From Sphaerodactylus townsendi (taxonomy: Eukaryota), in the NCBI RefSeq assembly GCF_021028975.2, contig NC_059438.1, forward strand, positions 15,376,001 to 15,440,000: DNA of 64,000 bases, given 5' to 3'. Shown piece by piece: positions 6,942 to 29,958 of this stretch. A model generated the notes under the pieces. The model did no database searches, was not told where the DNA came from, and was given only the letters and a program-made list of their open reading frames with translations. Every line of letters begins with the position of its first letter. Position 1 is the first letter of the stretch. A program made the position numbers and the translations under genes.

Positions 6942-9900
6942 CTATCTACAAAGGTCCGACAGGACTGGGTCCCTCTTGTGTTTCCTTTTCTTCCCGTAAT
7001 ACTGGTGCGATTTGCTACCCGGGTGCTGCTTGTTAGTCACCGAGGTACCGTGGCTTGAATTGGCTGGACCTTGGAAGCCTTTGCTGGAAGAAGCGCGGAA
7101 CAACCGTGTGGATCCGTGCTGCAAAGAAAGGACGGAAGCGGTATCAATGCACTGTTGACTATTTGGGCCGTGTTGCCGTGACCAAAAAGGCAAGCAATGC
7201 CGGGTGCAGGCAGCACAGGAAGTCCTGTGGAAACCCCAGCAACAGGAGGCTAAAAAGATTTTGGATACTTCCCCACTTCATTCCAGGGCAACCTGGCCTG
7301 GCTGAGGAGCAAGATTTGAGTCCAGCAGTGCCTTAAAGGCCAACAAGATTTCCAGGGTATGAGCTTTCAATAGTTAAAGCTCTCTTCATCAGATATTTGT
7401 CGGATATCTGACTCCCACAAGGTTATATCTTGGAAATCTGGCTGGTTTTTTAAGGAGCTGTTGGACTCAACTCTTGCTCTTCTAGGTCAGACCAGCCTGG
7501 CTGCCCACCAGAAACTCTCCTGTCTAGTTATTATCACCATCATCATCTTGGGGGCTTGTCTAATCTTAACGGAAAAATCCCCCAAAATATTTAGCAAATT
7601 AAACTCCAGAGTTTCTGTTTTCACCAGAATTATTGGCTCTTTTCATGCTTCCAATTCTTGCAACACACTTCACTATTTTAGAAGAAGAAGAAGAGTTTGG
7701 ATTTATACCCCACCTTTCTCTCCTGTAAAGAGACTCAAGGTGGCTTGCAAGCTCCTTTCCTTTCCTCTTCCTCTCCCTCTCCTTTCCCTTCCTCTTACAG
7801 TAGCTTGGTAGTGGGCCCTGATATAATCTTTGGGGGACTTTTATTTTTCTTGAGTTTGAATAGTAGGAACTGAGTTAGAATGGTGTCATTGCTCAAGTAA
7901 TGGACTAGAACAGGAGTCTGCAACCTGCGGCTGGAGAGCCGAAAGGTTGCAGACCCCTGGACTAGAACCTGAAAGTCCAAGGTTTGAATCCCCACTAGGA
8001 TATGGAAACTTGCTCGATGGTCTTTGGCCTTTAACTCCCTCTTAGGTTAGGCTAAGAAGGTTGCCGTTGGTGAGAATAAAATGGTGGGGGAACAACCAGG
8101 TTTTACTCCCCCTGGCATTCCCCACTGGGGAGAAAAAAGGGGGGATAATAATCTAAAAAAACGAATAAGCTGACTCAAAATGTTAAATGGTTTACATGCC
8201 ACAAGTCATTATGCCGTTTGGGCAGGAGCCCAGGAAATACAGTACCCAAAGCCCTCAGGAAAAACTTCATTTAAAGAAGGCGTGGAGCCCGTTTCAGCCT
8301 TGGAGAAGAGAGCAAGGGTGTTCCACTGACCTGTGACTTGTTCACAACGCCAGATACGTTTGCCGTTTGGCTGCTTGGCATTTTCCCACTTGACTGCGTG
8401 GGCCCCAGCGACACGCTCTGAGCCACCGTTCGGTTGGATGCCGTCTGACGGCAGCCCAGCTGTTTAGAGGTTTTGCACGGTGTCCCGTCAGACTCCTGAC
8501 GAAGACAAGAGGCAACAGTTGGAACACGCTGGACGCTGGTTACGCAAAATCCAACTCGAGCATCAGCCGGAATGAACCCTCATTACGTGCGTAAGTGGCT
8601 ATGTGACTTCAGTTTTACTCGGCCGCTCACCCTCTGAAATTATGTACAGGGGCTAAAGAAGAGAGGGAGGAGGCTGGCGTTTTGAGCCACATCCAAGCAT
8701 TTGCTTAAAGAATTAAGGCACCCTTCTCCTGTGACCTATCACTGCAACTGCGGAAATGCTCACAAGCTAAAACTTCCATCCCAATTAGTTTTCTGCCATA
8801 ACGGGAAGCTGATCTGTGTTTTGTTTAATGTTAAATCACTGAAACTTCCATCTGCTTTGGATCCTGAACTTCAACAGGAGCTCTCAGCATCTCCTAATCC
8901 AGTGGTGGCGAACCTTTGGCACTCCAGATGTTGTGGACTACAATTCCCATCAGCCCCTGCCAGCATGGCCAATTGGCCATGCTGGAAGGGGCTGATAATA
9001 GCAATCTAGATACTGGAGATATAAGGATTCGCCACCATCAATCTAATCTGTGGGTCCTGACTCAAAAGTTAATTGTGAGGCCTGTGAAAAGGAGTTCCCA
9101 ATGCTTATTCATGCTGTGTTTTTTCCTAAGTGGGCCACCGTATCAAACAAATCTGGACTCGCGGGGTCACCATACCGAAAAGGCTGGGAACCGCTGCTCT
9201 GAAGCAAGCAGTCTGCGAAAACGCAGCAGTGCTAAGCGCCACCTGAACCCTCTAGGACCCCCCCAGAAGCTGAACGGGCTTTTGCCCCTTTTCCCTAGCA
9301 AACTTTTGCTAGACGGGCATCATCTTCTGGAAGCCCCGAGCAGGCTATTCCGCCATTGGCCTCTGCAGTGGTCTCTGTAATCACTGGCCTCAGGGTACGG
9401 GGGGAAGGCCCAAACTATTCTAAGGCAGAAGCCAGAGTGTTGCATGGGTCTTGACCATCATATTGACTACTGAGAAGTTTTTAATACGTACTACGTCGCT
9501 GGAGCTGGAAAGCGTAGAAGACGACGACGACAGAGGTCCAGAGGAAGAGTTTGACGAATGCTTGCTTGGCGTCTCGGAGGTTTTACTTCTGGGTTTTCCT
9601 AATGATTCGCACTCCTCAGAGTGGTTATTGTTGCACTCGTCTAGCTGCTGGTTATCGACGGTCGAAGACACCCCGTTCCCTGGAACAAAGGCAGTCGGAG
9701 AACAGAATGAACAGAATGCTCCCACTTGTAAGGGGCTTTCGGTGTCATAAGCCAAGCCTTGATTAATTTTCTTCAGCTGGAAGAGCCAGCCCAAAATTGT
9801 GGAGCCAGTCTCAACCCCCCCCGGGGGCATGTCCTTTACAAATGGCAAGCTTAGACTTGCACTGTATGGAGCTGCACTCTAAAACATGCATAAATACTGG

Positions 9901-28400: not shown

Positions 28401-29958
28401 AGCATCATCCCGCTCTCGTTTGCCTGTCCCACTCCACCAGACAAGATTCAGGACTCACCGAAGGGCTCCCGTAGCCGTCTCTCGGACCGCCAGGCTCTGA
28501 TCGAGCAGCATGGGCCCCAAACATCGGACGACATCTCTTTGGACAAAGGCCGGGATTGTCTGCTTCTGTTGCAGGAGTTTGGAAATGCTGGCACAAGCAA
28601 ATTCTCTCACATCGGCACTAGGGTCTTGCAGCTACAAAAAATATAGATATATGAACGAGCGAAGTTAGAAGCTTGCACAATCATGTGTACCCTGTTTTTC
28701 CCCTGCAGGGTCCAACTATACAACGACAGCCAGCTACGGTTGGGTCTTAACCCAGAATCTGGAGCCACAGTTCAGGTTTGTTTACACAGGAAGGTTTCCT
28801 TTCTCTCCATGGCATGAGTATATTCTGAACGTTTTGTTCTGTTTTCCTGAGAAGAACTGGAGGGAACTGTGCTAGTACCAGGAGTCGGAAAAGCGTTCTC
28901 CGTCTATGATCCAAGGGAAAGAGGGAATAAGAAATTGGGATTCCACCCCCCACGAGTTGTTGCGGGTCTTCCACTTATTTGTATGAAACTGTTTTGTTGA
29001 ACGCTGAAGTTGGTTCGAGGGGATCACCCCAAAGATCCACCAGCCCAAAATCTGGCAGAGCATTTATCTGGGCCAAGAAACACCTGTTAGTAAGTCAAAT
29101 ATCAGTTAAGTATTTTAGCTAATATTAATTAAGCATTTTTAAAAAAGCATTAACTGTATCAGATTACAACTGGAGAAACCTGATTTCAGAGGGCCACTCT
29201 ATCACCCAGTGGAGCGCTCACACTTCTTCAGCACCTACCTCGAAGGGCTGTGGTGATAACAGCGGAGGGAAGCCCCGTGCCTGAGGAGGATGCACAGGGC
29301 TTTGTAAAAATACGAGATAAAGCAAAAGAGGTGCAGTACAGTGTAAAAGCATAAACAGAAACAGATCACCGTACTGGCGGCTGCTAAAAAGACCAGTACT
29401 ACATACATACATAGGCCTTTACTGGGATTAAAAGTATAACCCAGTATAATAATTAAAAGGAGCCACAGTTTGATTCACGTTAAAAGTAATATAAAACAGA
29501 GCAGGAAACAACATTATAAAAAATGCATACGTTATAATTTCTCAGTACCTACAACTGGCACTTATTCCGAACAATTCCTAACGGCGCCCTGTAGGAAACC
29601 GGCTACCCTCTCACTGCAGAAGGACTAGGTCCAATTGGTTATAAAGTGCAGCTACTGGACCTCCGCAGAGCAACCCTACAAACCGTCATGCACAGGAGCC
29701 GGGTTTATGCCAGGGCGTTGGCAACCCCAGTTTGCAAGAGGGCATGCAAGACTTGCGGCTTTTGGACCCAGAAGAAGGAAGCAGGGAAGGAAGGAAGGAA
29801 GGAAGAGGGCCGGGCTGCTTGCTCTTCCCCACCTTCTCCAGCAGCTCCGCCGCCGCGGCCGCCTCCCCTCCTTCGGCCTCGCCGCTTCGGAGCGGCTTCG
29901 GAGCCCCGGCCGGCGAGAAGGGCGGCCGCCCGAACCGCTTGGCTTTGCTCTTGCCCAT
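22403..29958 (-). CDS. HEATR3: HEAT repeat-containing protein 3 (Syo1 homologue), exons 1-10 only; 3' exons absent
   Basis: Exons: 29958-29833 ([16 protein letters not shown]...AAELLEK), 28631-28459 ([14 protein letters not shown]...[11 protein letters not shown]), 27821-27734 ([29 protein letters not shown]), 26531-26419, 25731-25622, 25484-25344, 24334-24054, 23795-23705 ([17 protein letters not shown]), 22943-22789 ([18 protein letters not shown] acidic loop), 22485-22403 ([27 protein letters not shown]). All are GT-AG with consistent phases; 1361 nt total and no stop codon is reached. Confidence 0.96.
23304..23602 (+). mobile_element. tRNA-derived SINE (Squam3-like)
   Basis: Head cagcatggtgtagtggttaagagc...ggtttgattcccc (A/B-box-like); (TTC)n tail. 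Confidence 0.85.
24437..24957 (-). mobile_element. Two tandem Squam3-like SINE copies (24437-24601 partial, 24655-24957 full)
   Basis: Two successive gaagaagag-tttggatttata...cacctttctctc starts. Confidence 0.8.

Follow-up and report, generated by a model that had tools for sequence, protein, structure and literature searches.

Does the gecko Sphaerodactylus townsendi carry a gene in which HEATR3 is fused to its neighbor, TENT4B? The question arises from a 64,000-nt stretch of its genome (contig NC_059438.1, positions 15,376,001 to 15,440,000; hereafter the window, whose own numbering is used throughout), in which HEATR3 stops after its tenth coding exon and the next recognizable exon on the same strand is the second exon of TENT4B. 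HEATR3, the counterpart of yeast Syo1 (symportin 1), is a chaperone and import adaptor for uL18 and uL5 of the 5S ribonucleoprotein (5S RNP), and TENT4B (PAPD5) is a non-canonical poly(A) polymerase of the Trf4 type. A fusion, if true, would tether the polymerase to a fragment of the chaperone from which most of the SYO1 domain is gone, and it would be remarkable in a viable vertebrate, since variants of human HEATR3 cause Diamond-Blackfan anemia.

The join is most probably not a gene fusion but an assembly collapse inside a highly repeated, palindromic miniature inverted-repeat transposable element (MITE). A collapse is favored because the MITE appears to be a chimera, because the sequence of a congener diverges from the window at the boundary of the MITE, because of the method by which the genome was assembled and its incompleteness, and because no intron from HEATR3 exon 10 to TENT4B exon 2 has been annotated. 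The full length of HEATR3 in other squamates and the poor quality of the assembly nearby favor it as well.

The two genes as they stand in the window

HEATR3 exons 1 to 10 were located by tblastn and by exact mapping of the public 454-aa protein (P0157), named HEAT repeat-containing protein 3 of S. townsendi. Exon 10 ends with two spare bases, AA, in phase 2, and TENT4B exon 2 supplies a single C before its first whole codon. The two exon ends are 2801 bp apart on the minus strand. Their phases are compatible (two nucleotides plus one), giving a splice codon of AAC and a frame that stays open. The hypothetical product would comprise 453 + 1 + 500 aa, or 954 in all, its continuity of frame predicted from the phases of the exons together with the two products in the annotation. 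The 500 residues of TENT4B are the 489 of the public product plus 11 codons that lie within exon 2 upstream of the ATG at 19567. The first-pass annotation of this stretch had HEATR3 end with exon 10, in phase 2 at 22403, and had placed TENT4B exon 2 next, 2801 bp on at 19601 and in a compatible frame; my reading of the exons and the donor agrees, as do the annotated products with its exon numbering, phases, and lengths.

It had also described the 3' exons of HEATR3 and exon 1 of TENT4B as missing from an interval that contains neither an N-gap nor a CpG island, and searches of the window bear this out in each respect. Full-length HEATR3 queries, six of them from geckos and one from a newt (P0009, 681 aa), matched exons 1 to 10 only; beyond residue ~460, the remaining ~215 residues found no tblastn match in the 64 kb. 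The first 189 residues of TENT4B from Gekko kuhli, encoded by exon 1, found none in the window either. No CpG island appeared in 300-bp windows from 19602 to 22402, where GC content and the observed/expected (o/e) ratio of CpG each reach a maximum of 0.53. The sole run of N in the window, 41503-41630, is distant from the interval.

What remains of HEATR3 has its N-terminal repeats (Pfam HEAT, residues 39-63, 28.2 bits against a cutoff of 23.5; Arm, 20.5 bits, slightly below the cutoff of 20.6) and 43 of the 259 positions of the TPR_SYO1 domain, PF25567 (profile positions 1-43, 25.0 bits, cutoff 27). The same domain scores 309 and 320 bits over positions 1-258 in HEATR3 of Euleptes and Heteronotia. 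The public 489-aa TENT4B product contains the NTP_transf_2, MTPAP-like_central, and PAP_assoc domains, according to precomputed Pfam matches.

Other searches added little. A stretch of HEATR3 exon 9 found no match in PDB. Exon 14 of Heteronotia matched fragments from mammals, birds, and lacertid-like and skink-like animals and no gecko at all, and the search is hence uninformative for Sphaerodactylus. None of the searches took in proteins of 121-367 aa, so that a model of the C-terminal part alone, on another scaffold, could have escaped them. An exact look-up of ten open reading frames of the window, for independent contigs, returned none.

The transposable element at the join and its flanks

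The interval between the two exons is a series of repeats and unique blocks (Table 1), among them the MITE that I take to be the junction. Its arms are 94% complementary over 80 nt, with the outer 56 nt identical, and it departs from a perfect palindrome at 3 of its 148 nt. Its summed contig depth is very high in all four Sphaerodactylus runs described below, marking a highly repeated family, and further copies lie within the window at 2302-2427 and 8899-8996. The first of these shows a perfect 8-bp duplication, GGTTAGAC, on which basis the family is called hAT-like. No copy was found in the HEATR3 loci of Heteronotia, Eublepharis, and Gekko kuhli, and the family appears to be lineage-specific and recently active.

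A single insertion should present terminal inverted repeats and an 8-bp duplication within one context. The element at the join has the inverted repeats, an imperfect duplication, and flanks from two contexts. On the plus strand, the 8-mer on its low side is ATCTACAC (22122-22129) and that on its high side ATCTAGTC (22278-22285), and these agree at six of eight positions. The contexts of the flanks, which weigh more than the mismatches, are quite different. On the high-coordinate side, the alignment with HEATR3 intron 10 of Heteronotia and Gekko kuhli reaches the very base that adjoins the MITE, past which both gekkonids carry a common T-rich sequence absent from the window. On the low-coordinate side, the sequence begins in the middle of a short interspersed element (SINE), called Rep2, and homology to Rep2 covers the 8-mer ATCTACAC itself. 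A single insertion would require that a 5'-truncated Rep2 landed precisely at what was later the target of the MITE. Because one flank is HEATR3 intron 10 and the other is the interior of an unrelated SINE, the element is best explained as chimeric, with one part from an insertion in intron 10 and the other from an insertion in a Rep2 element elsewhere.

Two ways of linking the flanks were tried and rejected. The intron-10 flank might have been the 5' half of the same Rep2, which would prove contiguity, and its score of 19-22 is to be compared with a mean of 19.8 for shuffled sequences. Block M might have been the continuation of gecko intron 10, and its score of 23 is to be compared with 21.1 +/- 2.3; blastn gave no match. 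Block M could not be aligned to introns 10-14 of gecko HEATR3 nor to the 10 kb downstream of that gene.

Contigs assembled from short reads (Logan) were mapped to 18300-23900, from two runs of S. townsendi (X1 and X3) and from runs of two related organisms (X4, organism B, and X5, organism C). Three unique blocks are covered in each of the four runs, all at single-copy depth: L, up to 21403; M, from ~21475 to 22068/22107; and R, from 22260/22278. No contig of the four runs, representing three species, crosses either the MITE or the SINE fragment at 21374-21512. All break there, and short-read contigs neither confirm nor refute contiguity across the two repeats. One contig from organism B, 443 nt in length, matches window positions 22568 down to 22278, the base next to the MITE, and then departs into 152 nt unlike the window; in X1 and X3 of S. 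townsendi, the intron-10 flank runs 18 nt into the MITE. Congener B is thus without this copy of the MITE, and its contig goes on into DNA that the window does not contain (one contig, its end unread). Its divergence at the boundary of the MITE speaks against a fusion that is old and shared, and it is compatible with an intact intron 10 in B.

The most likely course of events is as follows. In the real genome, one copy of the MITE probably lies 125 nt into HEATR3 intron 10, and a second copy probably lies within a SINE, ~2.5 kb upstream of TENT4B exon 2. Either the assembler or the gap closer would have merged the two, a merger that I infer took place in silico rather than in the animal. Lost in the process would be HEATR3 exons 11-15, the DNA between the two genes, the 76%-GC promoter and exon 1 of TENT4B, and part of its intron 1, the dropped pieces probably becoming small scaffolds that were later filtered out by the authors of the assembly. 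The in-frame fit of the exons would be a one-in-three coincidence.

Table 1. Features of the HEATR3-TENT4B interval, in window coordinates. Exon positions in the second and third lines are those of whole-codon blocks.
Feature	Position	Strand	Remarks
HEATR3 coding exons 1-10	22403..29958	-	453 codons + 2 nt; exact mapping of P0157, tblastn
HEATR3 exons 1-5	29958-29833, 28631-28458, 27820-27734, 26531-26421, 25730-25623	-	
HEATR3 exons 6-10	25485-25342, 24332-24054, 23795-23706, 22944-22789, 22485-22403	-	
Natural GT donor of HEATR3 exon 10	22399..22402	-	GT = 22402-22401
HEATR3 intron 10 stub	22278..22402	-	blastn and alignment against intron 10 of Heteronotia and Gekko kuhli
Palindromic hAT-like MITE, putative junction	22130..22277		148 nt, CAGGGG termini
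Rep2 SINE, 3' part	21996..22129	-	adjoins MITE, begins mid-element
Unique block M	21513..21995		occurs in organisms A, B, and C
5'-truncated SINE fragment	21374..21512	+	second repeat unbridged by short-read contigs
Unique block L	19602..21373	-	presumably 3' part of TENT4B intron 1
TENT4B exon 2	19478..19601	-	phase 2 acceptor; AG precedes, first base C, then codons
Rest of TENT4B	6942..19477	-	stop codon 6944-6942

Other squamates, the assembly, and alternative readings

The four geckos compared share the gene order CNEP1R1-HEATR3-TENT4B, and the orientation of the genes is likewise conserved. In Heteronotia, HEATR3 has 15 coding exons, with exon 11 ~1 kb past exon 10 and exons 11-15 spanning 8.5 kb. 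In Gekko kuhli, TENT4B exon 1 (76% GC, CpG o/e 0.96) begins 9.4 kb after the HEATR3 stop codon, and the segment equivalent to the missing stretch amounts to at least ~17 kb. More than 20 squamate HEATR3 proteins were examined, and all other than that of S. townsendi are ~670 aa in length, in keeping with the first-pass statement that HEATR3 is normally conserved in full. They include the 673-aa protein of the sphaerodactylid Euleptes, 90% identical to that of S. townsendi across exons 1-10. Those exons are intact in S. townsendi, with no decay, and its branch length in HEATR3 (0.079, versus 0.044 for Euleptes) is inside the range of other geckos. The comparison of the locus in related geckos that had been proposed yields a separate, full-length HEATR3 elsewhere and no second instance of the junction, given that the contig of organism B, a single one, departs at 22278.

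A 480-aa database protein (P0005) from another species joins the N-terminus of CNEP1R1 (its exon corresponding to 36363-36434, minus strand, in the window) to HEATR3 exons 2-9 and then runs into intron, a chimeric gene model. In Gekko kuhli, a public model at L004:41744-42311 has a 283-aa product with no Pfam match. The product opens with the conserved long N-terminus of TENT4B, which begins MDPRIAWFQPEQ, and long runs of Q, H, G, and S/A follow; TENT4B seems to have been truncated or split in this annotation.

The locus in the public annotation of S. townsendi (GCA_021028975.2, CM037627.2, 15388399-15415958) is the exact reverse complement of window positions 12399-39958. HEATR3 and TENT4B are kept there as two genes, with no intron from exon 10 to exon 2. 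Annotated HEATR3 reads through the exon-10 donor to AAG (K) and then TAG, and the annotated coding sequence of TENT4B begins at the first ATG inside exon 2, 19567. A read-through end together with an internal ATG is the pattern expected from clipped junction reads if the assembly contains neither exon 11 nor exon 1, and genuine reads across a junction of exon 10 with exon 2 would more likely have yielded a joined model.

The S. townsendi genome was built from linked reads (10X) with Supernova and then processed by Tigmint and ARCS; gaps were filled by TGS-GapCloser with ~6.6 Gb of Nanopore sequence, followed by polishing with NextPolish and scaffolding with 3D-DNA (bioRxiv 10.1101/2021.08.13.456260). 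Small scaffolds that mapped to chromosomes were discarded, and afterwards every scaffold under 10 kb; the result is 88.3% complete and 7.8% missing by BUSCO (tetrapoda), with a merqury completeness of 89.5% (bioRxiv 10.1101/2021.08.13.456260). For such a build, the loss of a segment with a 76%-GC exon between abundant copies of a palindromic repeat is an ordinary failure.

The quality of the assembly near the join is poor, judging from a patch that disagrees with the reads and from an N gap in a CpG-rich stretch. The patch, 40 bp at 20253-20291 in block L, disagrees with the Illumina contigs of X1, X3, and X4 at 17 positions. It looks like a local reference error, perhaps a poorly polished gap fill; as a micro-inversion it was rejected, the best identity to the reverse complement being 50%. 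A further error is likely at 20587, where the window has T and all four runs have C. The N gap (128 N, at the position given above) falls within the most CpG-rich stretch of the window, 40001-42000 (CpG o/e 0.75-0.91), probably the promoter region of CNEP1R1, and is a second sign that GC-rich promoters have been poorly assembled here.

Several considerations nevertheless weigh against a collapse. The missing exons of HEATR3 and TENT4B were recovered nowhere, in a search that took in the 64-kb window. There is no run of N at the join, every run shows single-copy depth for the unique blocks L, M, and R, and the evidence from organism B is one contig record, its 152 unmatched nt unread. Furthermore, true recombination between two copies of the MITE would leave an identical sequence. 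A real germ-line deletion produced in this way could be heterozygous in the reference male or carried by some fraction of the species. From such an allele, splicing would link HEATR3 exon 10 with TENT4B exon 2, and the HEATR3 promoter would drive the 954-aa chimera, with the N-terminal repeats and acidic loop of HEATR3 ahead of an intact TENT4B nucleotidyltransferase. The chimeric MITE fits recombination in vivo as well as it does collapse in silico; donor, acceptor, and reading frame are all intact; and X1 and X3 carry MITE sequence beside the intron-10 flank. I nonetheless consider such a deletion unlikely, though worth bearing in mind. If homozygous, it would strip most of the SYO1 domain from a conserved ribosome-assembly factor, and one would hardly expect such a loss in a healthy lizard: a missense change at Gly584 of human HEATR3, within the part missing here, destabilizes the protein and causes Diamond-Blackfan anemia (PMC9136880). 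The lack of decay in exons 1-10 and the lack of a fusion model in the public annotation also count against it, and with an assembly incomplete by 10%, a missing segment is a priori far more probable than a deletion of this kind.

The presence of blocks L, M, and R in three species, broken at the same repeats, might suggest an older event, a fusion gene fixed in the Sphaerodactylus lineage. This is scarcely credible in view of the point where the organism-B contig parts from the window sequence, the full-length HEATR3 of Euleptes, and the age of the MITE, which must be young because its arms differ from a perfect palindrome at so few positions. A rearrangement, by inversion or translocation, might instead have carried HEATR3 exons 11-15, together with TENT4B exon 1, to another place, with both genes functioning over a long range or in trans. 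The absence of these exons from 64 kb agrees with this, and there is nothing direct in its favor. The conservation of gene order and orientation, and the unlikelihood that two genes would be split at once and both remain functional, make it highly improbable. An assembly collapse within the MITE is left as the reading to be preferred. The first-pass annotation had judged a collapse or a heterozygous deletion to be at least as likely as a fusion. The chimeric MITE, the congener contig, and the method of assembly now favor the former pair, and the fusion is without positive support.

Relation to known systems

As an artifact, the join has its own consequences. The public models of HEATR3 (454 aa) and TENT4B (489 aa) would be truncated and may mislead screens for gene loss or gene fusion, and palindromic MITEs and GC-rich first exons would be weak points of this reference assembly.

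Compared with HEATR3/Syo1 as known, the window is alike in that exons 1-10 encode the N-terminal ARM/HEAT repeats and an acidic stretch, but it lacks exons 11-15, ~215 residues that account for 216 of the 259 positions of PF25567. Compared with TENT4B, all from exon 2 onward is intact, with the three domains named above, but neither the GC-rich first exon nor the CpG-island promoter of Gekko kuhli is present. Chimeric genes made by non-allelic recombination between transposons offer a parallel in that the flanks of one MITE come from two sites, but no event in the animal is supported, and the contigs that approach the junction all break in the MITE. A further parallel is the class of repeat collapses and losses of GC-rich first exons in short-read assemblies of sauropsids, with which this case shares a junction at a high-copy palindromic repeat, a missing exon of 76% GC, and a linked-read assembly ~10% incomplete by k-mers. 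It departs from that class in that the join is without a run of N and the lost segment also contains ordinary exons that are not GC-rich.

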